DNA of 64,000 bases from Thalia democratica. Lineage: Eukaryota. Shown in pieces: positions 7,601 to 62,101 of the stretch (position 1 is its first letter; each line of letters starts with the position of its first letter). The translations under genes were made by a program, and so were the position numbers. The notes under the pieces were generated by a model. It was not told the origin of the DNA and made no database searches. It saw only the letters and a program-made list of their open reading frames with translations. The stretch spans positions 15,562,001-15,626,000 of the forward strand of contig OZ241826.1 in the NCBI GenBank assembly GCA_965202585.1. Reading direction: 5' to 3'.

Positions 7601-10600
7601 TTCGTTGTTTCTATTGAATAAACAATTTATTTTATTTTATCTTTATATTGGTGTTTGTTTAGTTTTCGGCACACTACTGAAAGCATACAGTGTTGCATAA
7701 GCCAATAAATAATTTGTTTTAAATAAATCATGCCCACTGGAAACTACTCAAACACATGAGCTATTTTGACTACCTGCATAAACAGTGCATGATACTCTAT
7801 AGAGAAGTTAGTTATGAGGAGCTACTTAATAAGTTTTATTAAAACATTAATATATACACAGATTGTTATTAAATGTTTTGACAAGCTGCGTAAACAATTG
7901 TAAAAAATTAAAAGATTGTTTTCTGCTTGGTCTTAATACGTGCAGCTTCTGCATTAATTACTTAATTATAAAAGGAAATAAAACTAAATATAAAAGTATC
8001 TACAAATGCCAGAAATCATAAACTAAAGTTCCTTATATGTTCTACCAAACACGCTTTATTTAAATGGATAGTCAGTTTTTGATTTTAATGCAAGTAGTTT
8101 TAATGCAAGTAGTTTTAAGTTTTGGGTAAAAAGCATTCGAAAATATAAATTAAAGGACAATGTCAAAATTGAATGTGATTTTCATTTTAATTTCACAATC
8201 ACAACTTGTCATAAATTTCTAAATTAAAACTCACACATTGAGTCGTTGTTGTCATTCGATTGAGATTGGTTCTCGTCAGCAACAACAACTGGATCCGTAT
8301 CCATATCATTTGAACCTGCTGTAATAAATATATATAAAAAGATTAATAAGTTTTATTTGTTTCTACAGTATCATAAGTGAATTTGAATTAAGAATCAAAT
8401 TTTATGTTAGTCTAGCTGTCATAAGTTCTTAAAAAGTGTTTGCAACTTTTAGGAATTTTAATAATCAATACTATTTAATTGTAAAAATATTAGCTTTTTT
8501 CAGTTTAAATATTAAGTAGCTTACATTTTCATTTGAACCTTCTGTAAATTTAATATAAAAAACATTACTACTACTCTATGTATTATTCAGATAGCTATTT
8601 AATATAAAATTGAAAATTCATACCAAACTAAGTGGTATAAATTTTTACGGTAAGTTTTTGTATTTTTTTATTTTATTTTTAATGCAAGATGTTAACTTTA
8701 AACGTTATATTTATTTTTTTATTCTAATAATATAATAATTACCTCTCATTAATGTAGGGGCGGCTGTGGTATTCTGTGAGCTGGAAAGTGCCTAAAAACA
8801 AATTAATAAAATAATCACAAGTTATTTATGAAACTTTAAAGTTATTAACCTCAAAAAAATTTATTAAATTTTTTAGCTTAATAAACGAAGTGTACATATT
8901 GTAAGAAAACTTATAAAACGTTTACTTTAATTGTTTAATAATGATGTTAAAGTAGTTATATTTGATTAAAATGGACTTCATAACTGTCTAAATACTATTT
9001 TTGAGCAGAAAAACTTAATAAATAAAAACTTTTTCTACTTTAATATTGTACACTTTTAATCAACCAACTTAAGTTCCATTAGTTTTCCAAAAATTACAAT
9101 TTAATTCACACGACAAAATAGGGGCTAGCAATTTTTTTAACTACAATATTTTTATTAACAAAAACAATTTTGTTTTTATTAAAATACTTGTTTTTTAATT
9201 GTGAAATCAAAAGATCATTTTTGTTCAAAAAATCGAAACAATTAGCGCGAGAGGTGTGGCGAAATTTTATTTATTTGCTGGAAAAGAATACACAAACAGG
9301 ATCAGCGCGCTGGCTGTGTGACGTCACAATCGTCGAGTGCTCGGCGGAGCGTGAAATTTCAGCTGGTTTTTCTGGAAAGTTCGCGATTTTTCCACGTCGC
9401 GCCGACATTTAATGCGTGTTTGAATTTCAACAAGTTTTTTTTTATTTATAGGTTTTGTTCTTTCGGTTTAACTCTTGAATTTACCAAGTTTTAAGTTTTT
9501 GAAAGTTTCGAATTATTGGTTGGACAAAAGTATCTATTAGTAATTTTAAATAATTCATCATTTAAAGCGTGTTAGAATTTCAACAAGCTTTGATTTTTTT
9601 TTGTTGAACTTTTTTTATAATAAATGTTAACATAAATAATAAAATGTTTGTTTTAATTTTTTTTTAATTTTTTAAAGTTTGTTTTTTTGGTTGAACAATT
9701 TTTTTAACTAATGCTAAGATAAACAAAAATATGTTTGTTTAAAATTTTAAATAAGTTATTTTAATTTATTTCAAATTTAAGTATCAAGTAAAAATGTTTT
9801 TTTTTGCGACAACATAGCTTTTGAAAAACATTTTTTTATACTAGAGTTTACTAAAACATTAATAATTTCATGAAGGCTTATTTTCGAAAAAAAGCGCGCT
9901 CAAACTAACGTTTAAACATTCATAAAGGAGAAAAACCAGTTATTTTAAATTCAAACACAAACTATTACACCATCACTTAAATTTTCTCATACAAAACTGT
10001 TGTGTTCAAACATTAATATTTTGTATTTAATCAAAAAACAAACATTTTCATCAGTTGAAGTGGACGGATTCTAAAAATTAACGTTAAAAACCTATAAAGG
10101 AAACAATATATAGTAATTAAACTGATTTTAGATTAACAAACGCACACAATATTGCATTACCAATAATTTTTATGTATACAATATTTAAAAAATAATATTT
10201 TACAAATAAACAAACATTCTCATCAGTTGAAGCAGATGGATTTTGCTGATTATTTTGATTTCCACTACCTTGCTTCTTGTCTTCCGTCGGTTTCTTCAAA
10301 GTCGACCAACGGCACAAGATCTGTTTGAATACTTATTTGTGATTTGAAATTTTTGAATACTTATTTGTAAAATTTATGTGTTTGAATATTTATTTGTAAA
10401 ATTGAAATGTTGAATACTTATTTGTAAAATTTATATGTTCACATCATTTTGATGGTAAATGATAGTAACTCGAGTTTTGACTTCGAGATTCTACAGCTAT
10501 CGATAGATTTTTTCATTTACAAACTGTATTTTTTTATTTAGGTTCTGCAAAATTGAGTAAATTACTAAAAAAAAGTTTATTCAATTATACATACTTTATC

Positions 10601-13600
10601 AAATAAATAAATAAATAAATAAATAAATATATATATATATATTCTTCTCCAGCTTTTTCATAGTAATTTTTTTTCTTTATCATAATCAACTTTTTCCTAG
10701 AACTTTATCAATAACACTGATAAGACATGAATGCTTACAAAAAAGGCTTTTAAAAATATTTTGTGCCGAAATAATAAACATTTACTTTAAAAATCATAAA
10801 TTTAACGATCCGGCGCAAACAAAAGACTCGGTCTTGCCGGCTCGTAAAAAACCGCGCCAAACTCACAAATACCGACTCGCTATTGGCCGAAAAGGATCGA
10901 CTCGACGCCGGTTAAATGTGCGGTGAAATCGTCGGAGCGTGTCGAAAATGAGTCACCGTGGAAACTCGAGTTTCCACTCGCGAATCGAAGTGACTCATCC
11001 GCTATTTCAACCTCCTTTCGCAACTCGCTTCCTTTTTGAAGAGGGCGCTTTGAGTACGAGTCGAACTGAAATTCTATTCAAATTTCCGTTCGCGTTGCAA
11101 AGAGTTGCATTAAATTTTCTGTTGATAATTAAATTTAGACATTTCCTTTTCTGTATTGAGAATTTATTGGAAATTTATTTATCACACCATATAAAACAAA
11201 CAGAATAATTTTATTTAAATTACCAGTGGCATTTTATGGCTCATTAGATTTTATAAGACTTGAATTAAATTTCCTGTTAGTAAATAGAATAAGGCATTTC
11301 CGTTTTAACTGTAATTTATTGGAAAATGGTTTATCACACCATATAAAACAAACAGAATTTTTTTTCGTTTAAATTATCAACAGCATTTTATGGCTCATTA
11401 GAGTTAAATTAATGAAATTAATTACAATAGAAATAAAAATGCGTATTGTTTTATATATTATATATAAGCACCTGTTGGAAATTGCAGGCATAATTAAGTT
11501 TTATATTTAACTTTTTTGATCACAAGTAAACATTATGAAAACAAAATTTTGAAGTGTGAGAAAAATTAATCTTAGATATTACTACATATACCTTTTTACT
11601 TCCTCAAAACTTCTAAACATTAGTGTTTTAATAAAATATTTCAGTGAGAGAATACCAGAATTGTGTGAAGGTTTAGAATTCATTTTTAATTTGATTCTTA
11701 ATTTTTTCAGTTATACAAGTTAAAATAAAACTTAAGTTGTATAGTTAGTTTTGATATCTAATTGTATTTTTCGTTTTGTATATAAATGAAACTACTTTGA
11801 GTAGAATATTTAGGTGGTTTCAATATGAAAGATAAGTATTTTATAAATAAACTTAAGCTCAAAGTCTAAGATTAATAGGCTTAAATGACTTAACCAACAA
11901 CAAGACCATTGAAACAATTGGTGATTTAGTTTTGAAAAGGTACAACTAATCTCTGCTTATAAACATGTCATCTTAAAAAGTTTTTGAGGTTCAAATAGTT
12001 TTACTAATTACCCAAACGAACAGTTTCCAAAGCTAGCAAATAATTAGACCGAAAGCTATAATCAAACCGATAAAAAAACAGTTTAAGGTAAATAAACCAT
12101 AGCTTGTAGTAGTTCAACCCAGATTAACTCAATGGACGAACAAGTGTAACGATTACGTATCTGTTATACTGAACAACTTGCTAGCTCTAACAATTTTGCC
12201 TGTAGAACCTATGTAGCTTAGTTAAATTTACAACCAATCAAAAAATGAGTGGGCAAGAGAACACATTTTTATCTCACCTCAACGGACTTTAAACAAAGCT
12301 AAATAAGGTATTTTACATCCAATAAAATATAAATTACCAAGTTAATAATCACAAAAACAGTGGAATCAACGCAGCATTGACAGTTTCCATAAAAACATAT
12401 TTCCAGTGGGTTCAACGCAGCGTTGACGGTTTCAGTTGATTATATATATATACACATAATAAAAAAAAATGAGATATCTGATGAGAACATTTAATAATAA
12501 AGTTGACGAAATCATTTAATTAAAACAATAACAAATAATAAAATACAAACCTCCAACGGATTAAGCGCGGCGTTGACGGTTTCTGCCATCTCACTTGACC
12601 CGAGGTCGATGTGGTGGATGACCTTGGCCAGGTCGGCGGCCAGCCCCCTCCTAACCATCAGCTTGGGCATGTACTGGTTGTTGTGCGGGTGGTTCCCCTG
12701 CATCTCCTGCTGCTCCACCCTCGACCTGATCCTGGGCACCTGCTTCACCGTCGTCACTTGGATGATGACGCTGCGTTTGGGTTTTTTTATATAAATATTT
12801 CAAATTTTTTTTTTGTGTTTTATAATAAAGGTATATTAAAATTTATAAGTTGATTCACCGTCGTCACTTGGATGATGACAAAAAAAATATTAAATTAATA
12901 AAACAACTTCTTAAAAACCGGTCCAAATACACATGTATTAGTTACTTGGATGATGACGCTGTTTGAAAGTTTTATTAATAAAAAAAAAACAATGAGATAC
13001 GAAAAATATCTTTTGATTTGCTCAAACACTTTTCTTTTTTAAATAACGTTTCACAAGTAGTTAAAGGAATTTTCGGCTTACAAAATGCATCCAAGATATC
13101 GTTAGGTTTAATTTTAAGAGAAAAGCCACGACATTACCAAATACACATTTTGAGTTTGTGGTTTACAGAAACAACTTAAATGCATTCTGCAATTCTCAAT
13201 TGAGCGTTTTTTCAGTCTAGACTTAAATATTAGCTCACAACTTGGAAAAATACTACACATTACTTTTCAACTAGTTTGCTATTCAATTTAGATAATTCAA
13301 ATGTTTCTTTGTTTCTTTTAACTACTAAAAAAACCAACCAAGTCAACTCTAATAATGCCTAGGCTACACTTTTAATTAACTTTAACTAGGAAAATTATTA
13401 AAAAAAAACATTAGTTTATTTAATATTTGACTACTTTTTTATTTACTAAAAACTCACCCAGTAAGTTCCAGCAATGCCCTCAGTTTCATGTGTTTCTTCT
13501 TACTTTCGGGGAATCCCACAGCCCTGTTGATGGCGCCCTTCAGCTCGTTGACGACCAGCAGGTGAACGTCCGTGACGTCGCTGCCTGGCAACGGGGCGCC

Positions 13601-16600
13601 GTGGAAGTAGGACTGGGCGACGGTTGCCACGACGACCCTGCATAGCAACGGGCAGTTGTCGTCCCAGAAGTCGTCGTCGAAGTTCTCGTCGGCGTCGCAA
13701 ACTTGTTTCTAATCGGGGGAATTTTTAACATTGATATTATTTGTTTTACTTTTTTATTTTTTTCTCATCAAAATTTTGTGATTTTTTGTGTGGACTATAA
13801 AAACAAGTTATTCACGATAAAAAAACTCGATTAAAAAATTAAAATACAGTTTGAACATTAGAAAATGAGTTGAAATAATTACTAAAGTTGTAAGTATTAA
13901 AAACCATTATTTATTAGCAGAACTTGTTTAAGATTTAAAACTCAGCAATATATACTTTTTTTAATCATAATTTATACAAACAATATACCTGATCGGACTT
14001 ATCGGATTTTTTGTCACCGCTTTCTTTTTTCATGTTTGTTTTCGGAACCAGCAAGTGATCCAGTAGTACTGACAAACACGATGAATCCTGTAATTAAATA
14101 ATTATGTTTTAATAAATACTTCAGTGCATTTTAATTAATCAAGTTTTTATTTTTATCCCCACAAAATTTTTTGTTCAAAGCTTATGTGTAAGCTTATTTT
14201 GAAAGTTTTGATGCAACAAAAGAAATAAATGAAGTAATGTTTTTTTTTTCGAAGAATGTTAAAAATGTAGTACAAAAGTCAGCATCAAATATTTATTTAC
14301 TGGTTACTTTGAAATTTATTTGTAAAAAGACTTAGTATATTGACTTATTTAATTTCAGAAGTTAAAACAATAAATATTAACCGGTCAGTTAAATATTAGT
14401 AATAAAATAAATATCAATAATTTTAATACATATTTAAAAATATTAGTATAGAGCAAGCTTCAATATCTACATACCTGACTAATAATAAAAGTATTGATAT
14501 ATTTATAACTACATACCTGCTTGATAATAGTAGTATTCGGATCGGCTTGGTACTGATGATTAGCCACTATAGAAGCTGTCACAGGGTAACTTTTCACTAT
14601 TTCCGCTATTATTCGCAATATTGAGGATTTTGATACCATTCGTTCGTCTGTATGATAATATACATTTCGTTTAGAATTTCAATTATTATATAACAATTAA
14701 TAACCATATATGACATAGTCAAAATAAACTGTACCATTTACACAACTGACATTTGTTAAATGTAGCAATTTTAGGATGCACATTTTTACAAACTTTGTGA
14801 TAATAAAATTAAGACTTAATAATAAAAATTATATTTTTCGTACTATTTTTTTTCTATGAGTAATAAAACTAACAATTACTACTGTCTTCAGGGGAACTAG
14901 TTTGCTGACGATGGGTCATTTTTGGGGTGACTGAAAGAATTGGGGTCCCCATGCTCGCTATTGGTCCGAAATGCTGGCCATATGGGTGCTGTGGATATAA
15001 TATTTAAGTTAGTTATATTTAATAAAACCGATAAGATTTTGTTTAAGTTTTACTATTTCATAAAAACAAACTTTTATTAAAATTTTCTTGATTGTTTTGA
15101 AAAATTATTCATTTTCCAAAAAATATAACATAAAAGTCAGTTACATTTTCACTTATTTTTCTTTTAATTTTTATAATCCAAAAAGCCTTAAAATTTTTCA
15201 TAAAACTAATAAAAATCAAGTTATGTAACATCAAATATTTCTAAACAGCTGCCGAAACAGTTAAAAACTCATTACAAAATGGCAACACTTTGACGATAAA
15301 ATGTGCAGATGTAATTGCTAGATATATGAAAATTAAATCCAATATAGTGATTGACGCCTTTTATTAATTTGACAACTGCTAACACTGCGTGTGCGCTTAA
15401 TTAAAAGAAAAATATTTTTTATAAATACAATGGCTTGTTTCAGTTTTAGTATTTGTAATCTTTTCTGGATTATGGTATCAACTGTTATGACACTGATTTG
15501 ACGATATGACAATTTTGTCTGGTACGTGATTATTTAGCTGTTGTGACGTCATAGCGTGTTTAATTTGATTTGCGGGCATTCGTCGTGATATGACACAACT
15601 TTACTTTTAAATATCACTTACTTACTTACTTCTAAAACATTTTAGCTTATATCAAAAAAATTAACTACTCACATAAAAATAACTCGGTTCTAAACGTAAC
15701 TCTTAGATTAAATTTTAGTAATTTTACAATTCAAGATATTTAAAATACCAACTTCAGACAACTTAATCCGGCTTACATGATAAGTTAACACCGCTAAAAG
15801 TTTTTCATAGAAAACTTATTGTTTCAAAAATACCTTAATTAATACTAAGTAATCCTACTTACACAAAATTGACCATGTTTGAGAAAATATTAGTTTTTCA
15901 GTTCCCGTTTCTTAAATTCATAGCTTAAACTTTTAACTAGTACTAAAATATAACTAATAAAAAAACTAGGTTGTTTAAAAATATTTCAATAAGAAATAAT
16001 CAAGTTACAACATTTCAGCAACTTCTTAATTTTTTTAATAAAAAATTCTAGTACATACACCTTTTAAATACTCTTAACCAGCGTATGTTATATGATTTTT
16101 ATTTTCAAAGCTGTACTACTTATTATTCAGTAGCGCATAAAAAAAGCCTCGATCAAAAAATACCAAGCATTTTTTTTTTACTAAAACATCAAACCAAACC
16201 TATTTACTTTTAGTTTAAATACAAACTAGCAAACTATTAAGTTAATTTCGAATGCGCAAACCAAACACAAACCTTCTTCCACTCTGAGCTGGGATCGTAC
16301 TTGGGGTACTTCTTCAGCACCAAAAAGTTGAGCAGCATTCTCATGGTTTCCACTGCGGGGTGTGACATGTCTTTATAATCGAACGGAGGCAAGGTGTTCT
16401 CGTTGGGTTGAGGGTCGCACTTGAGTTTCCTGGTTGCGTTGTTCTCAAGCAGCTCCTTCTCGGCGTGCTGGATCTGTGCGTCTGTTGTGGCTGGTTGTTA
16501 GAAAGACAAGAAGAAAAATTTACTAAAGGAGAAACTTTGTTTGTTGTGTTAGATAGGTTTCAAAAGGGTTCGGGGTTAAGAAAAAAATTTCTTCCAAAGG

Positions 16601-22600: not shown

Positions 22601-25600
22601 CTATACTTTCGTTTCGAAAAACCCACTTACCCATAAAAACATAGCTTTACTAACAACCTGTACTTTTTTATAATTGACCAAAAATTATTACTGAATCTAA
22701 ATTCAGTCGTATCCATTTTATCAACAGCTGAAGTCAACATTAAATTAAACCGCTACCAACCTCACACTGGACTCTCCCTCCTTGTACGAGATATGATAGA
22801 TTTTTTGAGTCAATTCAAAATTGTACTACTGAACATGTGAAAATTTACCAAATTCCAGGTTTTTTCAGGTTTTTTTTTTCAAAATTTTCCGAATTCCAGG
22901 TTTTTTAAGGTTTTTCCAGGTGTTAGGTAAAGTGGCAACCCTGTAATTAATAATCTAGGTTGTTGAACCACAACCAACCTCACACTAGACTCTCCCTCCT
23001 TGTACGCGTCCTCTATGGTCTTCATGTTCTGCACGGAGTACTGGTACCACTTGCCCGTCCGCTCGTCGAACCACATCCACTGCTTCTTAAACATCTGCTG
23101 GTTGATCGCGTGGTGGCGCTGCATCGACGTGCAGGTTCGCATGTGAAGGTCGATCAGCAGCATCACTCGTGAGACCCAACTGTTTAGCAAATATATTTAA
23201 GTTTGAATCTATTCACAGGTGGGTGTTTATATGAGTATTTTATTTGCATGTTTTATATTACGCGGGATACCCAACTGAAAAAAGGGAATTGTAAAAATAA
23301 TTTATTTATATAGCATTTAAAGGCGTGCTTAATTAATGTATTGAATTATTTTTAGTTTCAATTATGTGTTGGAATATTATAATTAAGTGGATGTTTGCAT
23401 GTTTATAAGGAGCAACACGCGTGAGACCCAACTGTTGATTGTTTAGTTTGAATAATATATTTATTTATTTCATATATACACCTGATTAAGCTTCTACTCT
23501 TTCCTTGCAGTTTTTACTTTTTTAAAGAGCTCCGTTAAAGTGTGTTAACACAGAAACATGTGTTAGTATAACAAAAAGAATACTGTTTGGAATTGCTATT
23601 GTTACATATTCCAGTGAACTTGCATCGCTAGGATCTTTATTAGCAAACGCTCAAATTTATATTTTGAACAGTTTATTTATTTCTATTAATTTTTTCAGGT
23701 AGGTTTATTAATACCCAACTGTGGAAATTATTTATTATATTTTTAATAAACTAATATTCAACTACCGGTATGTACATTACAAGGTTGGAATGTAGGGGTC
23801 AATCAACAGCACGACTGCTTGGAGGGTTCACTCGGATGTTACGTATGTTTAAAATGATAGTTTTTGTTAAAAAGTCTGCTCAGTTAATAGGATCAACTAA
23901 AACATGTGTAGTCATATTTTGCTTGACTATAAACTTGTTGGGAAACATATTGTGAGACTTGAATGGAAACGTTAGCGAGGTAGAAGGTTGTTTGGTTGTT
24001 GAACTCTTTTATTATTTACATAGTTGTGTTACTAAAATTAAAAATTGTAATACTTTCAGCAGGAGTAATCGAGATGAAAATTATTGAGAATTAAATTTAA
24101 GTATTTGATAGAACGGAAGCATAAAACCGAACTACTGATTAAAAAAATGCCTTTTATAAATATAAACGAGTAAATCAATAAATATAACGAATTATTTTAC
24201 TAGTTTTATCCAATGTACAGCAAACTATAAATAAAAGATATCGTAAATTATTGAAGTGGATATTTGTTTTAATTTGATCAATATATGCACTGGAGTACGT
24301 CCGGTTTATTTTCAAACAAATTTTCCAAAATTATCAAATCGCCATATTTAAAAACTTTTCACAAAACTAAAACTATACCGAATAAAATAGTAACAAAACT
24401 TAGTTTTTACCAAAAAATACGCGTAAAATATAAACTTTACTCAAGAAGTTCATCCATTGCTATAAGACTTAAAAAGTTCTTACTTAAAGTTTCTTTACTT
24501 AAAAGTTCTCAATAAAACTTTCGAAAAATAGATGCGTCGAAAGATCCTTTGATTAGCGCAATGACATATAAATTTTTAAAATGCTATATAAAGATCAAAC
24601 GAAGCCCTTTTAAATCGATGTAAGTTTTAAATTAGTTTAGACATCAAAGCACGGATGAAACTTTGTACAAAGTCATTAATTTTTCAACGAGAGCTTGTAA
24701 TACAGGAAACCTCTGCGAAGATGATGACGCGTTCACGTGGAAAAAAGCGATTTTACTGGCAACTTGGAGAAAATTTGATATTTTAAGATTTTGTGTATTT
24801 TGCTTGCATTTTAGGAGAAAATTGATATTTAGAACTTCAAGCCAGAATATTTTTTTTTTAACTTATTGTTCACAAAACAGTTAAATTTATATTTTTTCAG
24901 GCAACTTGAAAGAATTCAATGTTTCACATTTGTAATTCGAAGAAAATTAAGGTTTTTTTTACACCTAGCTCGGATAATTTGAAACTTTACTCTTTTTAAT
25001 TTGTTAAAACTTGACGCCTTGCCTTTTGTCGCACAAAGGAACATTATGCGCATTTTTAATAAAAACTTTTATTGCTTTTATTCGGTTTCACGCGCATTGC
25101 TCGAATTAAACGAGGCTTGAATTTTTTTTTTGCAATTTTACATATAATGTTTCTCGCAAAAAAAAAATCGCTATAAAGAAACTTGACGCAGCAAAACTTT
25201 TTCATTTCAAAGCGTGCCGCTTTCGCACATCAATAGGCGATACTATGACGTAATAAAGGTAGCTCGTGTATTGAATTACGTTAGTTTACGCTTTTTGGCA
25301 GTAAACTTTGTAATCCGCAGTCGTTGTGGATACATAAGGCGCCTGTACGTTTTATTTGGGCATTAATGTTTATTTTATAATGGAATTAATTCTGATTTGT
25401 TGGCAAGTTGCCACCAAAAATTTTATTTGTTTGTTTTAGGTTTCCCACCCTTTATACTTTTAAATGGCATGAAACCCTCAAAGAAAAAAAAATACTTCAA
25501 AGATTTAACGGCTAATATACTTTCACAAATGACATTAATATTTTTTTAATACATGAATAACATTTAACTCTTGAATTCTTTTTAAATTTTCAATGTTTTT

Positions 25601-49100: not shown

Positions 49101-52100
49101 TTATTAAACAAAACAAACCGATGGGTTCAGCGTTTCTCCTTCTGCGCATGGCGGGTAGGTATTCAGGAGTAAGTAGGACGTTGAACAACTTCTCAAACGG
49201 GTCACAATTTAGGAAGGTTTCCAGCCCGGTTGAGTTCAAACACAAGGCACTGTTGAATGTTTTGACAATTAATAAATAATCAGGTATATTTTATATAAAA
49301 ATTAAAAAACTATTTATTACTTTACAGCAAACTAATTATTGAAACGCTTAAGAAACAAACTATTGATAATTGTTTATTTCATTTACACTAGTTTACTGAT
49401 TATTTTATTGATAATATTGTGAATTATTACTTGTTTATTCAGCAATAGAATTTTTAATTTTATTAGTTATATTGTTAATCAGTTTTTCAGTTAATTTTTA
49501 TCTCAAGGCTCTTAATAACTAAAAGGTTAAATTTGTGGCACCAAGTCAGTTTTACAAGTAGATTGTTATAATTTGTTTTCATCTTATTTAAACAATTAGA
49601 AATTTTATTTAAAATGATAGTTTTATTTTAAAGTTAATTCAGTTGCATAGTTTGTTTGGATATACTCCAACTTAAATTGTTTCATTTAATTCAATTATTT
49701 TGATGTTATAACATAAACAATTCAAATAAAAAAATTGTTATAAAACCACTTTTCATTTTGCAAAACAGATGTTTCTATTTTAATACTGTAGGTGCAATTT
49801 TTAATAACAGCATTCAATTGACAATTTACTGCAAGGTTCAATGACTTATCAAGTCAGGTGTAACAATTTAACAATGGATTGTTTATTTCATTCGCAATAA
49901 TTATTTAATTTTGATATACGTTTGAATTATACGTATAAGTTACGAAATATTGAACAAAGTTTTAGAAATAATTCAGTGTAATTAGACACAGCTAATGAAA
50001 ACAAGATTTGATAACAAACTAATTAAGCAAAACATGTTTACCAAATATGTAAGAACATAAAAGCTAATTAGATAAATGAGCTCAGCTTAGCGGATTAAGT
50101 TTATTTATAGATATCAAAATTTCTGATAATATTTTAGTTCGTAGAAAATCAAACAATTTATCAAAATTTTTAAACGACTAACTTTTTGTGGTTATATATT
50201 TTATTACTTAGAATTTTAATACAAATATAATTGTAAACAATGCTTTAATTTTAAAAATAATAGCTTGTATAATATTATTATTACCTGTAAAAGCATTAAA
50301 CCTAAAATCCACTTTAACTTTAAGTTTTTTTTTTGGTACTCTTTAAGTTTTTTTTAAATACTTTTTACTCACTCCAGTACATTATGCAATAAACACTCAA
50401 ACACCAGGTTTATGTTTCAGTTTAGCTTAAATAAATACATAAGTTTAAATAATTTTATTACACTTATATTTTTGAACCCACTTTAGTACATTAACGAATA
50501 TACAAACACTAGGTTTATGTTTTTGTTTAATGTAAGAAAATTTTAAATTTTAATTAATTTTATTATGTTAGGACTTACCTGTTAGACACATTAGGCAGTA
50601 TTATTATTTTATATTTAATATATTTTAATCACTTGAGTACATTATTCAGTTAACATACAAACACAAGATTTATGTTTAACTTTAAGTAAAATATATCTAA
50701 ATTTTTTATTATTTTATGATTTTGTAACATTTATTTTTAAACCAACCTGAGCACATTAGGCAGTGAAGCGAGCACTTCTCGGGTGGCCGGGGGATTTTTC
50801 ACCAACAACGAGTGCATTATGACGTCAGTGAGCTTTTTCTCCTGCAAGTACCTAAGCAAGGATGGTTCCTGGTACACGTAGTGAGTCACTACCTCCATCG
50901 CTGTGGATGGAAAAGATAAATTATTTTCTTTACAAGAACAATACTGATTATTTTACCAAAATTTAAAACGCTTACAAAATAAAGCAAAGCTTTAAAACAT
51001 TAGAATAAATATTTTTACTGACTACAGCAGTAGTTATTTTTAGTTACTAAAACACTTCCGAGTTATGCCTACCAGTCCTAAAATATTTCTTAGTCTTACG
51101 ATAGTAAGCATTTTAACCAATCTAGAAAAACAGTCTTATAGTTTTGTAACCATTAAAATCCCAAAATTTCAAGTATTTTTTTCGCTCTCAAATCAATCTA
51201 CGTTTAAATAACAAAAACAAACCGAGCAAGAAGAGCGGACTCCCGTAGAACTCTGCGTTGCCAATGATGTGCTTCAGTGATTCGGGCAGCGATCCCTGCA
51301 TCATGTTTCGCACCGTGTCGGTTACGGACTGGTTGTTCGAATCCATGATGGCTTTCTTCAGGAAGTTCAGAACCGATTTGAACAGGGCCTGGCGCTGCGG
51401 GAAGCATTGCACTCCTGTGTGGTAGTAGTTATTTTAGTTATTAATTTTTATTTTCGATTTAAAAGTTAAATTTTAAAACATTGTAGATATTGAATACTTA
51501 TTATTTTAATACGAAATCAAGAAACTATATTGAATTTAAATCTTATCAATATAAACTCAAAGAAGCTAAAATATGTTTTAAGATTGTTTAGGTGTTTAGG
51601 ACATGTATACAAGTGTCAAGTGGACTATTAAACATTCAAATGTAAAAAAAAATAAGTGAAAATTTCCATATCCTAAAGATGCTTAATTTCAGAAAACCAA
51701 AATCTTAAATTGCAATCTTAAGAGGAAAATACTTTTAGTCAGTACTTTTGTGCCTGGTGTTGCGAGAAGCATTGGACTCTTGGACTCCTGTGTGGTAGTG
51801 GATTGGTTTATTTTTTAAAATGGTCGCTTTGTAGTTTTTAATTTTTGCTGGCAACACATCAAACGATTAAATTTATATTTAACTAACGAGATTGTTTGTT
51901 TGGTATAAATGAAAAAATTTATTCATATCCAGTTGTTCAAAATAAATTTAATATGTGGAACAAAACATATATAATATATGATTGTTTTTATATTTTCATG
52001 TTATCCCAAAACTATCTACCAGGATTATAATTGTTCGAATCAACGTCCATACTTTCAGCGGATTGAATTAAATTTGAAAAAAATATAAATAAACAATTTA

Positions 52101-55100
52101 CCAGGTTTGTAAGTATTGGTGTCAACGTCCATACTTAATATTAGACATAATTAAATTTGTATAATTAAATAAATAAACAATTTACCAGGTTTATAGGTAT
52201 TTGTGTCAACATACATACTTTCAGCTTATTGGATAAGTTTATATTAATAAACAACATACCAGGTTTGTAAGTATTGGTGTCAACATCCATACTCTCGGCT
52301 GACTGGATCGTGTCAACTTCCATTTCTGTGTGGCTTGTGCTACCGCTTGAACTGGCTTCGTCTTTATTTAAAATTATTATACATAATAAATAACTGTATG
52401 AATCAACATAATCTCATTGTTATTACGAACTAGCACCAAAGTTTGTACAGCAACTAGTAACCATTAACTATCATGTTTTTAATTTCCAAGATATCAAATG
52501 ATCCAAAAAAAACTATAACACTTGGAAAAATACATTAGTTAAAAAAGTGATTTACCTCAATTTAAGTAGGTATACTCAAAACAATATACTACAGGCTTAT
52601 TACATTACTTAAAAGCAACCTGAATTTTAGTATGTGGGTAGTCAAAAAGTGGTGTTAATAAAAATAACACCTTGCTTAGTAGGGAAGATTACCTGAGTTT
52701 TAATCAGAAAGATAGTAACTGCAAGGTAACGCTTAAATATCTATCTTACTAACTAGTTTTAAGTAACATAAGTAACAAACCTGAATCTCAAGTGGGTACA
52801 AGTAGGTGCTTATATGAATATATCAACTAAAAACATAACAAATCTATGTTTTTAGAAGGAAGATGAAAATTACGAGGTGATTTTTATATATGTAATACCA
52901 CCTTGTATATATAATACTTAGTACAGTAGATTACCTGAATTCTTAGTAGGAAGGTGGTAACTACAAGGTATTAAATGTAATTAACACCAAACTAAATTCT
53001 TAGTAGGAAGGTGCACTCTTGCAATTTTGTACGCTCGTGCAAATTTGTACGCTCGTGCAAATTTGACAGCTACCCACTTATATAAGTGACATACTAACAA
53101 TTCAGCAAACAAACCTGAACTCTTAGTAGGAAGGTGGTAACTACAAGGTGGCGTCTTCTTCCTGCAAATGTCGACCTCGTGTTTCAGCCTGTCGATGAAC
53201 ACCTGCAATCCGTTGGCGTTCTGGAAGGACTGCCACTCTATGTTGGTGATGAGGTCGATCACCCGCACCGCCCTCGTCACAAACTGTTTAATGTTGTCTA
53301 GGTAAACAGGCTGCGTGCAATAAAAAATAAAAAAAAACTCGGTTGGTTTAAATAATTTTAAAACATCTAATTTAAGTAATAAGAGTTTAGTTCGTACCCT
53401 TTCGATTTTCAAAAATGTATACAGAACTTTTTTTTAATTATAAACGAACTTAATTAAAAACTAAGTATTTTTATAACTTATCGTTTTCTGTTCTTAACTA
53501 CAGATTTTAAGTTAATATGATAAAAAACTTAAAGATGTACAACTACATCAAGTGTGTTAGATGTATAACTACCAACAACACCAAAACTAACAGTGGTTTG
53601 CTCCTGCTGGTCGCCCATGTTAGTGACAACTGATAACAGTGGCACCATCATGCCGCTGTGCACCAGGGAAATGCCTCCTTGCTCGAAAGAGGACAGGTGG
53701 TAGAGGAAAGAGAAGAGAGCCGTGGCGAAGCTGTGCGGAAATTCCGCCGATCCGCCTTCTGTGTGAGTTATTTTGCGTAATTTTATTGTTACCATATCGT
53801 TTTAGATGTAAATTGAAGCGATACATGTTAAATTTATTAATTATTATTCTACTTTCTATGAACAATTTCTATTATAACCATATATAAGTTATGCAAAAGT
53901 AATTATGTTTTTAATTTTTTGGCGAAGCTGTGCGGGAATTCCGCCGATCCGCCTTCTGTTGTGAATATCATTTTATGCGAAAAAAAGTATGAGATTACAT
54001 TTACAGCTATTAATGCTTGAGTATTTTCTTACTACATTAACTTATTTCAATTTTGATTGAAAAGTTTTGCAGATTAATTTAGATCATTTAACGATCTGTT
54101 TTTTTTTTTTTGAATAAAACTAGGTGAAAATCCACTAATCCGCCTTCTGTTATTCAGAGTACTTTGTAAATTTATGTCGTGTGTAAGATAACGCTGGCAA
54201 TTAATTAGCAATCGAATTTTATTTAGCGGTTAATCCTTCTTGGTATGTTAAGGGTCCGACCGGATCAAAAATCAACAAAGTTCGATCAGAATTCTACAAC
54301 ACATAAATACTGTGCACTTCTAAAACAGGACATTCTTATTCAAGTTATTTTCAATGTTTGAACTAGTGCTGTTTAATTTTTTAAGTGGGCTAATAACCAT
54401 GTTTAAAACAACAATCGTACTTACGTTTATCTGATTTGGTCATGTTTTCAATGCATCTCCTCACTAAGACAGGCAGGAATCCGTGATACTGGGACATACC
54501 TGTGAAAAAATTTATATTAAAAAAATAAGGAAAAAAAAAGTCAAAAAGGTATAGTTAATCAACCACATTGAGCCACATGACACAACATGGTAGATACCTA
54601 TTTATACTAGATTTTTATTATAACTATATAACTAATACTGTCATATTATTTACCAGGCACTGAAACATACCAGTTAAAAATAAAGATTTAAATAGCTAAT
54701 AAAAAAATAATGAGCTACATGGTAGAAACCATGAGACATACCCGCCATTAACTCATATTATTAATAACAATATAGATTAAAATATTACATTACTTCCAAC
54801 ATACCTGTCACGTCTATAATTGAAGACAGCCTCGAAGGTCTATCTCTGTTGTCCAAGTGGACTATGGATGTGAGGGTCCTTAAAGCGGCAGCTTTAATGT
54901 CCTGTTTATATTAATTTTAATTTTAAATATAAATTATTTTTAGAGTCCTTTACTTTAATTTTAGCACTAAGACATTGATCAACTATGGGTTTTTTTTGTT
55001 ATTCTAATTTATCAATTTAATTTAAACACCTTTACGAGCCAAAAAATTTTAAAAGGCTTACTTATGTGTTATTTTTGATAAATTATATAAGTGTTTTTAA

Positions 55101-61100: not shown

Positions 61101-62101
61101 TACATAAAACATTTACAGATAAAATAACAATTGAACTTAAATGTTCGGTTCAATGTTAAAGTTGTCAAATTTATTTTTTACTTAATAATAGCAAACTACT
61201 TTACAGTGTACTATTTTTTTGATCAAGTTATCCAACTGGGACTTTTTTAAGAACTTTTCAATGAGTAGCTTGCAAACATAACTTCATTGTAGCAGACAGG
61301 TGTGTATTGAAAAGTTTTAAATTAAACACTTAAGGATAAGCAATACGCATGTAGAACAAACTTTAAATATACCCGTTTTATTCATGTAAACTTCTTCCCT
61401 ACTAATTTATTTAGAAACAAAACAGACAAACCACATACAAGCGTACATTTCTCTAACTTCACCTAGAAAAATGTTTCTAACCTCTACATAGTTGCACAGG
61501 TAAAAAATACTTTATATTCAATTTAGTCCCTACATATATTGTATAAGATAAACCTGTTTACCTCTAAAGAGTTGTACAGATGCCTATTGAAGGAACATTT
61601 GATCAATAGTGATGTGAAACGGAGTTTAAGTTGCACTAGTGAGCAAATCTGATCTACTTAACTCAAAAATATACAGATACTAACCTCTACAGAGTTGTAA
61701 AGATGCCTACTGAACGAATACTCGATCAATAGTGGTGTGAAATGGAGAATGAGTTGCACCAGTGAGCAAATCTGATCTACTTAACTTAATAATATACAAA
61801 TACTAACTTCTACAGAGTTGTAAAGGTGTCTGCTGAACGATTACTCGATCAGCAAGGATGTTAAATGTAGGATGAGTTGCACCAGTGAGCAAATCTGATC
61901 TACTTAACTTAAAAATACATATTCTAAATACTAACCTCTACAGAGTTGTACAGGTGTCTGCTGAACGAATACTCGATCAGCAAGGATGTGAAATGGAGGA
62001 TCAGTTGCACTAGTGAACAAATCTGCTCGTCTGTGTTCACCCTCAACATCCACTTGGTGTCGTTGGTGGTGCTGCAAGCTCGCGCGAGGATGTCGTCGAA
62101 T
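1582..62101 (-). CDS. HUWE1: HUWE1-like HECT/UBA/WWE E3 ubiquitin ligase, partial multi-exon gene (64 coding exons in window; both ends outside window)
   Basis: Manual splicing gives an unbroken 8870-nt frame with GT-AG introns. Peptides match my recollection of human HUWE1: [142 protein letters not shown]. Confidence 0.95.
4172..4386 (-). CDS. HUWE1: HUWE1 exon 63
   Basis: [16 protein letters not shown]...; charged coiled segment. Confidence 0.88.
4939..5059 (-). CDS. HUWE1: HUWE1 exon 62
   Basis: [21 protein letters not shown] (HUWE1 RW.EEC.VL...DCV motif). Confidence 0.9.
5274..5397 (-). CDS. HUWE1: HUWE1 exon 61
   Basis: LLEPVAANG...FASMLP. Confidence 0.78.
5550..5653 (-). CDS. HUWE1: HUWE1 exon 60
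   Basis: VNTPNQE...NQSVFH(R). Confidence 0.8.
5867..6057 (-). CDS. HUWE1: HUWE1 exon 59
   Basis: [11 protein letters not shown]...MRQNQ. Confidence 0.85.
6368..6529 (-). CDS. HUWE1: HUWE1 exon 58
   Basis: [10 protein letters not shown]...PISI; phases fit. Confidence 0.8.
6862..7030 (-). CDS. HUWE1: HUWE1 exon 57 (acidic region)
   Basis: [12 protein letters not shown]...LFVQLEDLF. Confidence 0.85.
7347..7477 (-). CDS. HUWE1: HUWE1 exon 56 (acidic region)
   Basis: [11 protein letters not shown]...DDDEDDD. Confidence 0.85.
8235..8318 (-). CDS. HUWE1: HUWE1 exon 55
   Basis: GSNDMDTDP...NDSM; phases fit. Confidence 0.75.
8743..8791 (-). CDS. HUWE1: HUWE1 exon 54
   Basis: [16 protein letters not shown]; tag/gtaatt, phases fit. 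Confidence 0.72.
10216..10320 (-). CDS. HUWE1: HUWE1 exon 53
   Basis: ILCRW...NPSASTDEN. Confidence 0.83.
10321..10436. repeat. Four ~29-bp tandem units (ttgaatacttatttgtaaaatt) abutting the exon 53 acceptor
   Basis: Read directly from sequence. Confidence 0.85.
12551..12770 (-). CDS. HUWE1: HUWE1 exon 52
   Basis: [34 protein letters not shown]. Confidence 0.93.
13458..13708 (-). CDS. HUWE1: HUWE1 exon 51
   Basis: [31 protein letters not shown]. Confidence 0.9.
13989..14087 (-). CDS. HUWE1: HUWE1 exon 50
   Basis: [13 protein letters not shown]. Confidence 0.88.
14517..14647 (-). CDS. HUWE1: HUWE1 exon 49
   Basis: [17 protein letters not shown]. Confidence 0.9.
14880..14988 (-). CDS. HUWE1: HUWE1 exon 48
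   Basis: HPYGQHFGP...SSPEDS; phases fit. Confidence 0.75.
16273..16481 (-). CDS. HUWE1: HUWE1 exon 47
   Basis: [12 protein letters not shown]...[10 protein letters not shown]. Confidence 0.85.
16797..16989 (-). CDS. HUWE1: HUWE1 exon 46
   Basis: [22 protein letters not shown]. Confidence 0.9.
17368..17551 (-). CDS. HUWE1: HUWE1 exon 45
   Basis: LTR...[36 protein letters not shown]. Confidence 0.92.
17801..17928 (-). CDS. HUWE1: HUWE1 exon 44
   Basis: [26 protein letters not shown]. Confidence 0.9.
18117..18261 (-). CDS. HUWE1: HUWE1 exon 43 (WWE domain, second part)
   Basis: [29 protein letters not shown]. Confidence 0.94.
22851..22943 (-). mobile_element. Possible hAT-type MITE terminus
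   Basis: Minus strand begins CAGGGTTGCCAC followed by repeated (A)CCTGGAAAAA/AACCTGGAATT subterminal motifs; no partner TIR found. Confidence 0.4.
22979..23179 (-). CDS. HUWE1: HUWE1 exon 42 (WWE domain, first part)
   Basis: [10 protein letters not shown]...[15 protein letters not shown]...[12 protein letters not shown]. Confidence 0.94.
26143..26270 (-). CDS. HUWE1: HUWE1 exon 41
   Basis: [23 protein letters not shown]...ITP. Confidence 0.87.
26779..27066 (-). repeat. 82-bp tandem repeat: three intronic copies of the last 42 nt of exon 40 plus donor
   Basis: Units start at 26779, 26861, 26943 and 27025. Confidence 0.95.
27025..27177 (-). CDS. HUWE1: HUWE1 exon 40
   Basis: IDHSASTL...[14 protein letters not shown]. 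Confidence 0.88.
27636..27717 (-). CDS. HUWE1: HUWE1 exon 39
   Basis: [11 protein letters not shown]...; follows the VYR/CDL motif. Confidence 0.88.
27763..27943 (-). repeat. Three intronic copies of acceptor plus first ~35 nt of exon 39
   Basis: Direct alignment to 27681-27720. Confidence 0.93.
28681..28784 (-). CDS. HUWE1: HUWE1 exon 38
   Basis: [26 protein letters not shown](R). Confidence 0.87.
29051..29116 (-). CDS. HUWE1: HUWE1 exon 37
   Basis: [22 protein letters not shown]. Confidence 0.78.
29326..29358 (-). CDS. HUWE1: HUWE1 exon 36 (33-nt micro-exon, may be optional)
   Basis: tag|[11 protein letters not shown]|gtgagt; phase 0-0, so not required for frame. Confidence 0.6.
29636..29751 (-). 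CDS. HUWE1: HUWE1 exon 35
   Basis: EDDGRMIDP...DQYPLMM; phases fit. Confidence 0.78.
30091..30288 (-). CDS. HUWE1: HUWE1 exon 34
   Basis: acidic/Pro linker with QEGE(S/T)PPQD repeats; phases fit. Confidence 0.8.
30602..30824 (-). CDS. HUWE1: HUWE1 exon 33 (UBA domain and UIM-like helix)
   Basis: [15 protein letters not shown]...AVQHLL...[11 protein letters not shown]. Confidence 0.93.
31016..31140. repeat. (TA)n microsatellites and a 24-bp perfect inverted repeat
   Basis: 31045-31068 is the reverse complement of 31117-31140, with a (TA)n centre. Confidence 0.9.
31339..31564 (-). CDS. HUWE1: HUWE1 exon 32
   Basis: [10 protein letters not shown]...EENIQQ, leads into UBA. Confidence 0.85.
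31988..32032 (-). CDS. HUWE1: HUWE1 exon 31
   Basis: [14 protein letters not shown]; cag/gtaagt, phase 2-2. Confidence 0.75.
32126..32247 (-). CDS. HUWE1: HUWE1 exon 30
   Basis: [11 protein letters not shown]...; cag/gtcagt, phases fit. Confidence 0.75.
32538..32687 (-). CDS. HUWE1: HUWE1 exon 29
   Basis: AMQLLWD...[20 protein letters not shown]. Confidence 0.88.
33060..33244 (-). CDS. HUWE1: HUWE1 exon 28
   Basis: [27 protein letters not shown]; alternative in-frame acceptor would start at 33256. Confidence 0.88.
33677..33753 (-). CDS. HUWE1: HUWE1 exon 27
   Basis: [13 protein letters not shown]...EIP. Confidence 0.87.
33997..34119 (-). CDS. HUWE1: HUWE1 exon 26
   Basis: [30 protein letters not shown]. 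Confidence 0.93.
38887..39024 (-). CDS. HUWE1: HUWE1 exon 25
   Basis: [18 protein letters not shown]...PERL. Confidence 0.85.
39414..39577 (-). CDS. HUWE1: HUWE1 exon 24
   Basis: [28 protein letters not shown]. Confidence 0.9.
39840..39970 (-). CDS. HUWE1: HUWE1 exon 23
   Basis: [11 protein letters not shown]...RATKKLK; phases fit. Confidence 0.82.
40207..43273 (+). mobile_element. 5'-truncated non-LTR retrotransposon (CR1/L2-like LINE), antisense in HUWE1 intron 22
   Basis: Partial APE endonuclease ([44 protein letters not shown]) and RT. 3' UTR has a stem-loop (43216-43235), AATAAA and an (AAT)n tail. Candidate TSD atacc at 40202-40206 and 43274-43278. Clade assignment is from motif recall only. 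Confidence 0.88.
40520..42889 (+). CDS. LINE ORF2 (endonuclease C-terminal part plus reverse transcriptase), 789 aa open; frameshifted from upstream EN segment 40207-40490
   Basis: [66 protein letters not shown]. Confidence 0.93.
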   Translation: MPNIDWRIPSTDFNKPHECFLNFCTDNFLTQVIENPTHKNGNILDLIICNHFGLDRIISHSTNFPLTNTCDHNLLSLKIKIENKVVPIAKKVSYDYKKADFKSINDFLSKINWTSLFKNSENLQHFYDQFISSIQISIKRFVPIFSKNNKSKKYPSHIKKLLKEKANLYKKSKTNKSLLIKYKNKSKEYQLAVKKYNFEYENKFCKNPNLKKFYSYVKSKLKLNNSIHLLYDNDKNKTVTSDFEIATLFNINFQKVFKKDESYQSFKLPQKNCNKMQNFFITYEDIISSINHLKDKIIRTPENIPPYYIKHVIQSIIFPLSLIFNCSLELSDVPKQWKTSFIIPVHKKGNIHDALNYRPISLTSGFSRIYEHIVSVKILNHLFDNKLLTNKQFGFVPNRSSTIQLLTCLHSWLVPYLKNEFTKVVYTDIQKAFDSVSHKRLLKILNQYGLHESLIDWFDNFLNNRSQRVLINNTLSDSLTIYSGVPQGGVVGPLLFLIYINDICSNIDIKSELSLFADDAKIFSQSNTSLQLSLDNIYLWLKTRKLNLNPSKCKILTINKKESSPTDLLINNIKLPEIKVFKDLGIYNSKDLKWNEHINYLYKIAKTTCYQILKSFKTNSASILTKLFKTYVRPKLEFSTQIWSPHLKKDINKIESVQRSFTRHICNRCNISYTSYNDRMIKFGLKSLEYRRWEFDLLILYKIINGKYKSFFNQFFNFSQNKYQLRGNNLKIKCKHDFQNSQWQGAFFHRAKAMWNRLPQDIVSCERVEQFRLKLKRFDLNTINTSKIN
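43278..43380 (-). CDS. HUWE1: HUWE1 exon 22
   Basis: [22 protein letters not shown]; donor gtatta abuts LINE tail. Confidence 0.9.
43507..43560 (-). CDS. HUWE1: HUWE1 exon 21
   Basis: [18 protein letters not shown]. Confidence 0.85.
43874..44051 (-). CDS. HUWE1: HUWE1 exon 20
   Basis: PTCVLMRDQ...[17 protein letters not shown]. Confidence 0.88.
44344..44468 (-). CDS. HUWE1: HUWE1 exon 19
   Basis: SYQFQQRQ...[14 protein letters not shown]; phases fit. Confidence 0.8.
44897..45079 (-). CDS. HUWE1: HUWE1 exon 18
   Basis: [10 protein letters not shown]...[11 protein letters not shown]. Confidence 0.9.
46057..46253 (-). CDS. HUWE1: HUWE1 exon 17
   Basis: QSEEEDIR...[13 protein letters not shown]. 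Confidence 0.88.
48075..48217 (-). CDS. HUWE1: HUWE1 exon 16
   Basis: GC-rich open frame, phases fit (SSGKSVDTR...EENQED). Confidence 0.82.
48698..48842 (-). CDS. HUWE1: HUWE1 exon 15
   Basis: [17 protein letters not shown]...LGNDP. Confidence 0.92.
49119..49249 (-). CDS. HUWE1: HUWE1 exon 14
   Basis: ALCLNSTGL...[22 protein letters not shown]. Confidence 0.93.
50747..50900 (-). CDS. HUWE1: HUWE1 exon 13
   Basis: [14 protein letters not shown]...[14 protein letters not shown]. Confidence 0.93.
51223..51414 (-). CDS. HUWE1: HUWE1 exon 12
   Basis: [22 protein letters not shown]...[13 protein letters not shown]. Confidence 0.93.
52020..52225 (-). repeat. Three intronic copies of the exon 11 3' end plus donor
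   Basis: 52020-52065, 52102-52135 and 52186-52225 align to 52260-52305. Confidence 0.92.
52260..52361 (-). CDS. HUWE1: HUWE1 exon 11
   Basis: linker [22 protein letters not shown]; phase 1-1 fits neighbours; aag acceptor. Confidence 0.8.
53115..53310 (-). CDS. HUWE1: HUWE1 exon 10
   Basis: [14 protein letters not shown]...[11 protein letters not shown]. Confidence 0.92.
53592..53758 (-). CDS. HUWE1: HUWE1 exon 9
   Basis: [20 protein letters not shown]. Confidence 0.92.
54425..54499 (-). CDS. HUWE1: HUWE1 exon 8
   Basis: [19 protein letters not shown]. Confidence 0.92.
54805..54901 (-). CDS. HUWE1: HUWE1 exon 7
   Basis: [17 protein letters not shown]...LSSIIDVT. Confidence 0.92.
55129..55270 (-). 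CDS. HUWE1: HUWE1 exon 6
   Basis: [16 protein letters not shown]...[14 protein letters not shown]. Confidence 0.93.
55541..55668 (-). CDS. HUWE1: HUWE1 exon 5
   Basis: [12 protein letters not shown]...[13 protein letters not shown]. Confidence 0.9.
55892..55987 (-). CDS. HUWE1: HUWE1 exon 4
   Basis: [12 protein letters not shown]...; aag acceptor (in-frame alternative 21 nt upstream)/gtgagt. Confidence 0.85.
56383..56445 (-). CDS. HUWE1: HUWE1 exon 3
   Basis: [21 protein letters not shown]; cag/gtaagt. Confidence 0.92.
60466..60618 (-). CDS. HUWE1: HUWE1 exon 2
   Basis: HLTALLSS...[14 protein letters not shown]...LSYLGE; cag/gtttgt. Confidence 0.93.
61562..62025 (-). repeat. Tandem array (about 123-128 bp period): three intronic copies of the last 90 nt of exon 1 plus donor
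   Basis: Direct alignment of 61562-61651, 61685-61774 and 61808-61897 to 61936-62025. Confidence 0.95.
61936..62101 (-). CDS. HUWE1: HUWE1 exon 1 (window numbering)
   Basis: [10 protein letters not shown]...[16 protein letters not shown]; cag/gttagt. Confidence 0.93.

Follow-up and report, generated by a model that had tools for sequence, protein, structure and literature searches.

Two short stretches of intron in the HUWE1 gene of Thalia democratica repeat the end of the exon beside them and differ from it almost exclusively at synonymous sites. The best explanation, to which we give a probability of about one half, is that they are dead units of a mirage-type junction minisatellite which came from, or exchanged sequence with, functional alleles of the exon end and then decayed. 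The silent-only differences most likely date from a time when the sequences served as functional exon ends and are not due to present-day reading of the copies. The window analyzed is a stretch of 64,000 nt (GCA_965202585.1, OZ241826.1:15,562,001-15,626,000), and all positions given below are relative to it. It is AT-rich, with introns of ~25% G+C, and the exons of a large minus-strand gene stand out as G+C-rich.

The exon and its intronic copies

The peptide of exon 52 (Table 1) aligns with residues 2206-2251 of human HUWE1, including ...TVNAALKPLE (PDB match, E 3e-6). On the minus strand the real exon end (12583..12551) reads GAA ACC GTC AAC GCC GCG CTT AAT CCG TTG GAG, followed by GTTTGT. 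The first copy, echo1 (12433..12401), reads GAA ACC GTC AAC GCT GCG TTG AAC CCA CTG GAA, then ATATGT. The second, echo2 (12387..12358), reads GAA ACT GTC AAT GCT GCG TTG ATT CCA CTG, then TTTTTG. A preliminary description of this DNA had counted seven changes in the 11 codons of echo1, all of them silent, and seven silent changes plus one replacement in echo2. Both counts are exact: the 7 nt that differ in echo1 fall in 6 codons and are 100% synonymous, and the single replacement in echo2 is Asn>Ile.

Table 1. Exons, echoes and associated segments at and around exon 52.
Feature	Position in window	Strand	Remarks
Real HUWE1 exon (exon 52)	12551..12770	minus	220 nt; RNA-contig joints 12770->13458 and 10320->12551 (X4, X5)
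Echoed end of the real exon, 33 nt	12551..12583	minus	donor GT at 12550-12549
Next exon downstream	10215..10320	minus	RNA joint 10320->12551 (X4, X5)
Neighboring exon 51	13458-13708	minus	
Echo1, 33-nt copy	12401..12433	minus	7 differences, all synonymous; AT at donor-equivalent position
Echo2, 30-nt copy	12358..12387	minus	8 nt different (7 silent, Asn>Ile); TT at donor-equivalent position
Intron-derived tail of echo1 unit, ATATGTTTTTATG	12388..12400	minus	alignment with relative
Acceptor-side echo of exon start	12851..12879	minus	28/29 identical; no AG in front; absent in relative L004
Acceptor-side echo with its own CAG	12941..12961	minus	17/18 exon bases (12941-12958), then GTAAC
Old donor-side echo of exon 51	13322..13372	minus	alignment with L004, which has an orthologous echo

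The distance from the real copy to echo1 is 150 nt, and echo2 follows 46 nt further downstream. Because exon 10215..10320 is joined directly to 12551 in RNA, both donor-side echoes sit inside a 2230-nt intron. The start of exon 52 likewise has two copies, in the intron on its upstream side (Table 1), a feature absent from the preliminary description. The echoed units consist of the 33-nt exon end plus a tail of intron start. In other words, they span the junction, and they lie in the same orientation as the exon, in the intron that adjoins it. The intron tail of echo1, ATATGTTTTTATG, is closer to the intron start GTTTGTTTTTATA of a relative, L004, than to the window's own GTTTGTATTTTAT. L004 is a 1365-nt contig from an ENA metagenome that carries the same exon, with 95% amino acid identity and 36% of third positions different.

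Two other parts of this neighborhood deserve mention. A G+C-rich block at 10792-11076, within the 2230-nt intron, includes an in-frame 159-nt exon called by the predictor at 10907-11065. The main RNA isoform skips 10907-11065, and the block appears without splicing in one low-depth RNA contig (10767-11030). A cassette exon or a nested element is a possible explanation. In addition, an intron island at ~13130-13250 is ~90% identical to L004, whereas the remaining intron is ~75% identical with many gaps. The island may be a conserved non-coding element, and an Rfam search of 10000-14000, which includes it, gave no match.

The copies are found at this locus and nowhere else. The echo 33-mer, allowing up to 3 mismatches, has no second locus in the 802-Mb assembly. 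Searches of the whole assembly with the exon peptide (six-frame) and by DNA, protein and pattern return this locus alone, with no paralogue. An independently built contig from run X1 covers 12029-12440 with 0 differences and spans both echoes. A contig from another sample, X3, has echo1, and in it the echo2 unit (12337-12391) is replaced by 17 nt (joint 12336->12392). A contig for the second haplotype of X1 has an alignment that ends at 12352. The structure is therefore real, confined to a single locus and variable in copy number. The differences do resemble those of two functional coding copies, as they might if the echoes had been copied from a second HUWE1 gene, or if both haplotypes had been stitched in tandem as an assembly artefact. 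However, the uniqueness of the peptide and the 33-mer, the difference-free X1 contig and the occurrence of echo1 in X3 all speak against this, and we consider it extremely improbable. A paralogue fragment as the source is rejected on the whole-assembly searches.

One feature of the host has to be kept in mind throughout. The second haplotype of the sequenced sample is 7-11% different in introns (contigs from runs X1 and X4; 12029-12352), and two RNA alleles of the next exon differ at 6 of 83 nt (10215-10297). The host species is therefore hyperdiverse and very heterozygous.

Splicing use of the copies

The RNA evidence comes from contigs of X4, an RNA-type run from the same organism as the assembly, and X5, a marine metatranscriptome of a relative ~92% identical. 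These contigs contain only the joints 10320->12551 and 12770->13458 and none at the echoes, with the qualification that contigs can miss rare isoforms. The preliminary description had noted that echo1 lacks the GT donor and had concluded that the copies have no direct splicing use, and on both points it was right. GT follows neither echo, and AG precedes neither. The region upstream of echo1 is AT-rich, non-coding and without AG, and the 117 nt between the real exon end and echo1 hold in-frame stops.

What if the echoes nevertheless serve as alternative exon ends or recursive-splice sites, or are otherwise translated, and are held by ordinary coding constraint? The reading frame and peptide of echo1 are intact, and its 150-nt distance from the real copy is a multiple of 3. 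Against these stand the missing GT and AG, the in-frame stops, the exclusive use of the canonical joint in X4 and X5 (which rare isoforms could escape) and the fact that X3 dispenses with echo2. Direct use is therefore very improbable. Two more specific forms of the idea fail as well. An alternative 5' splice site or exon end has neither a donor after the copies nor such a joint in the RNA contigs. A tandem exon duplication or mutually exclusive exon does not fit a copy of 33 of 220 nt that has no acceptor and donor of its own.

Junction echoes across the gene

The exon-52 echoes are not alone. Exons were predicted with a small dynamic-programming model, with RNA confirmation for 10000-15900 only; there the model reproduces the confirmed junctions except for 10215-10320, which it truncates while adding three unsupported calls nearby. 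The terminal 60 nt of each of 47 confident exons were scanned against the adjoining introns. This finds 27 junction echoes, and in 24 of them the end is no more than 5 nt away from the exon edge. Shifted controls, four in all, in which exon ends were compared with the introns of other exons, give 0 echoes. In this HUWE1 gene about one junction in four carries an echo, and ~13 exons are echo-bearing.

Across the window GT is kept in 14 of 18 donor-side echoes and missing from the other 4, and AG is kept in 4 of 7 acceptor-side echoes. Stop codons have arisen in echo 61867 (TAT>TAA) and echo 52234 (TCA>TAA). An echo at 52020-52068 (minus) of exon 52260-52361 differs at 11 of 16 third positions and at 2 of 33 others and keeps its GT donor; it is more extreme than the exon-52 case. 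Echoes that have both AG and GT (23262-23431, 61685-61771 and elsewhere) are called as spurious micro-exons by a splice-aware predictor. Junction echoes are thus traps for automatic gene annotation, several having been called as micro-exons by the predictor used here.

A sample from the rest of the assembly (G000) offers little for comparison: 20 random 10-kb stretches yield just 8 confident exons and one 86-bp satellite. This satellite (L010 3155-4100; G000:C1:2403155-2404100) is a near-perfect tandem array of at least 11 units. Separately, contigs C8 (12-18 Mb, 53 Mb) and C6 (13 Mb, 67 Mb) hold dozens of protein-kinase domains in tandem clusters and in single uninterrupted open frames, which looks like a large intron-poor kinase expansion.

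The codon signature of the differences

The mismatches between echoes and exons are distributed over codon positions 1, 2 and 3 as 21, 13 and 71. In alignments of whole units, the divergence at codon positions 1, 2 and 3 is 0.089, 0.051 and 0.339, respectively, and that of the intron part is 0.309. The whole-unit comparison was a repeat, as 40-nt intron flanks had looked unrelated because the intron parts of many units are short. Pooled Nei-Gojobori estimates are 0.37 for pS and 0.047 for pN, and pS exceeds pN in 14 of 15 junction families. With each variant counted once, pN/pS is 0.154, and a bootstrap over families spans 0.09-0.24. Leaving out the exon-52 family gives 0.161. One neutral copy beside a constrained exon is expected to show a pN/pS of ~0.5, a value that the bootstrap never reaches.

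Base composition does not account for the third-position bias. Third-position differences exceed those at other positions 2.5-3 fold at G/C sites and at least 3.5 fold at A/T sites. The clearest test of the filter is that of third-position transversions, which are about 4-fold commoner at four-fold sites (16/78) than at two-fold sites (5/92; Fisher p=0.004), whereas transitions are equal (14/78 and 22/92, respectively). Since transversions avoid two-fold sites and transitions do not, the filter is synonymy itself and not a mutational effect with a period of 3. Synonymy conditional on the transition/transversion class comes out as expected (45/50); that test is uninformative, and the comparison of transversions at four-fold and two-fold sites was used instead. 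Changes private to the echoes number 12, 10 and 31 by codon position. These counts were dropped as a test of polarity: if the exon changes silently and a further echo is copied afterwards, the older echo will seem to carry a private change.

The counts for any single echo are small. Four of the families have 0 replacements at 93 replacement sites, and they show 7 silent differences against an expectation of at most 1.7 (p=0.002). It follows that the copies were already silently diverged when young. The preliminary description had argued for long-term coding constraint. What stands is a protein-level filter that chance does not produce; what does not follow is that the filter acts on the echo itself over the long term.

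Polarity of the changes

The exon end of L004 reads GAG ACC GTC AAT GCT GCT TTG AAC CCG TTG GAG before its intron starts. At codons 5, 7 and 8 (GCT, TTG, AAC), which hold 4 of the 7 differing bases, L004 agrees with echo1. Therefore, the echo has the older state there, and the window's real exon has changed silently; echo1 has partially retained older exon codons. At codons 9-11 (CCA, CTG and GAA in echo1) L004 agrees with the real exon, which places three changes on the echo branch. All three are silent (p ~0.017). This polarity comes from a single outgroup at nearly saturated sites, and the real exon, echo1 and the L004 exon are roughly equidistant (7, 7 and 6 differences). According to the preliminary description, its case would fail if the echo codons were ancestral and the silent-only pattern compatible with chance. 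The first of these is half true, as the codon assignments show. As to the second, seven randomly placed changes preserve the peptide in 1.5e-5 of simulated cases, and the three echo-branch changes alone give the value above. Taken by itself, the exon-52 case is weak evidence for constraint.

Other outgroups are scarce. Relatives occur in marine metagenomes and metatranscriptomes from TARA, ENA and JGI. Protein searches for further exon-52 outgroups return L004 only, and a protein search of the full library gives mostly short fragments, with no full-length HUWE1. For exon 62101 there are three distant relatives (62-64% amino acid identity). In all three the array is missing, and their divergence is too great for polarizing codons.

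The outgroup result bears on the simplest alternative, a plain one-off tandem duplication in which the echo decays neutrally, the real exon drifts at silent sites and exon 52 is the luckiest of many echoes. The assignment of 4 of the 7 differences to the real-exon branch is what such a duplication would give. The p of ~0.02 for the other three is uncorrected for the choice among the ~13 echo-bearing exons. Furthermore, mutation in this DNA is biased toward AT, and the G+C content of third positions is higher (0.64). However, the third-position share is too high even when composition is allowed for. Plain duplication also predicts the neutral pN/pS of ~0.5, well above the observed 0.15, which hardly changes without the exon-52 family. 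In addition, the young echoes without replacements already carry an excess of silent differences. Plain duplication is accordingly an unlikely account, and the origin from functional exon-end alleles remains the preferred one.

The fate of old echoes

Exon 51 shows what becomes of such copies over a longer time. Its old echo in the window was missed by the threshold scan. L004 has two echoes of the same exon (414-464 and 530-580, with a 116-nt period), and the window has one. The window echo and the second L004 echo have six derived states in common. Both therefore descend from one echo older than the species split, and the array predates that split. The inferred common ancestor of these echoes differed from the real exon by 5-6 changes, all of them silent (TTG>TTA, CTG>TTR, GAA>GAG, CTY>TTG). 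After the split one lineage gained a TAG and the other lost its first (5') 9 nt. The silent differences thus came early, and the later decay ignores codon position.

Echoes do not appear to stay protected once they are stranded. This leaves one part of the earlier argument unsupported, namely that the constraint is a long-term one on the echo itself. Stops and replacements occur in other echoes, and the exon-51 echo has decayed regardless of codon position since the split.

How the silent differences may have arisen

Two processes would together produce copies that differ from the exon mainly at silent sites. In the first, the real exon keeps drifting at silent sites after the copying event, as is shown for 4 of the 7 bases of exon 52. 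In the second, functional exon-end alleles of very diverged haplotypes would have served as templates for the copies or would have exchanged sequence with them later. A hint of such exchange comes from position 12581, where the window's real exon and both echoes have GAA, whereas X3, X5, L004 and the second haplotype have GAG. Unequal crossover within arrays, gene conversion and break repair off the homologue are possible routes, and break repair of this kind would stall where exon homology meets unalignable intron. Copies taken from functional but diverged alleles would start with differences that selection has already filtered. Perfect copies may be lost quickly by slippage, which would leave diverged copies over-represented. 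A stranded copy would then decay regardless of codon position, lose its GT, gain stops and replacements, and come and go as a length polymorphism.

Some observations on the source fit less easily. Among the 40 of 563 variants listed, which within 12551-12583 cover position 12581, none is a real-exon allele with the echo-branch CCA, CTG or GAA. The window's exon is separated by 7 nt from echo1 and likewise by 7 nt from the relative's exon, and therefore either an allelic source would have to be very deep or the echo is old. Allelic silent diversity, estimated from few sites, is ~0.3 in one exon and is possibly much lower in exon 52.

Alternatively, selection might act on the echoes by proxy. 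Here, frequent gene conversion or unequal crossover would feed echo sequence into the exon, and echoes with replacements would yield defective HUWE1 alleles that are weeded out. Such weeding may be possible where the population is very large, and the arrays are variable in length. A pN/pS of 0.15 implies an echo branch with only ~1/4-1/3 of the neutral replacement load. GT is kept in enough donor-side echoes that swapping one in is possible. The GAA that the window's real exon and both echoes share at 12581 fits local exchange here as well. On the other hand, conversion would also erase silent and intron differences, yet divergence is high at third positions (0.34) and in the intron part (0.31). 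Neither echo1 nor echo2 has the GT, other echoes contain stops, and since the split the orthologous echoes of exon 51 have decayed at every codon position. Selection by this route is doubtful, if somewhat less so than plain duplication.

A related idea, which we also regard as unlikely and place level with plain duplication, is that second-order selection holds the intronic copies translatable. If arrays turn over fast, any unit may become a working exon end, and selection would therefore purge units with replacements even in the absence of any expression. In effect, the arrays would store spare exon ends and donors that have been tested in advance.

Known systems and significance

The closest parallel to these repeats is provided by the mirages of lancelets, which are minisatellite-like tandem duplications of exon/intron boundaries found in Adh3, the globins BflGb6/9, troponin C and PGBD5 and have units of 81-100% identity (PMC3087553, PMC3902484). 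The HUWE1 echoes are like them in several ways. They are direct repeats across a junction, on the 5' or the 3' side of an exon, with units of tens to ~150 nt. Normal splicing is undisturbed, and copy number varies between haplotypes. The exon-52 echoes themselves have the exon edge and the intron in one unit and the same orientation, together with intact splicing in the RNA contigs and variation in copy number. The structure therefore belongs to a known kind. To our knowledge, mirages have been described in cephalochordates only, and the present host may be no lancelet. Many mirage units, though not all, carry AG/GT; most echoes in the window keep theirs, but echo1 and echo2 have lost the splice signal.

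A difference from lancelet mirages as reported is that, at a pN/pS of ~0.15, the HUWE1 copies hardly depart from the exon except at synonymous sites. Neither codon-position analysis nor synonymous-only divergence appears in PMC3087553 or PMC3902484; the founding description of mirages lies outside that comparison. Relative to these two papers, the synonymous-only divergence of unused intronic copies is new.

Other systems share some of these features. The 37-bp VNTR in intron 7 of human F7 has a first unit that spans the exon 7/IVS7 boundary. It is likewise a junction-spanning minisatellite, with pseudo-donors downstream of the real one and use of the upstream site (PMC1557585). The F7 units, however, are near-identical and young, without silent recoding, and they form a single locus, as against ~1/4 of the junctions of one gene here. 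In the Rogers model (discussed in PMC3087553), internal duplication spanning AG|GT proto-splice sites lets introns arise or grow. There, too, a duplicated junction segment brings sequence from an exon into an intron and provides spare splice sites. Here, in contrast, there is no new intron, and the copies lengthen an existing one of 2230 nt. Tandem exon duplication that leads to mutually exclusive exons resembles the present case in that copies diverge under protein-level selection with mainly silent differences. However, in exon 52 the copying is confined to the final 33 of 220 nt, without flanking splice sites and with no use in RNA.

Mirages have been reported from a handful of lancelet genes. 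In this one large gene roughly every fourth junction is affected, and a related species has such repeats too. The copies bear a clear protein-level signature although they are intronic and unused. If the signature stems from haplotypes that are very diverged and serve as sources for copying or exchange, the repeats would be a by-product of extreme heterozygosity. They would then document the behavior of break repair at places where homologous exon borders on unalignable intron, and they would represent a measurable route for the growth of introns and the gain of spare splice sites.
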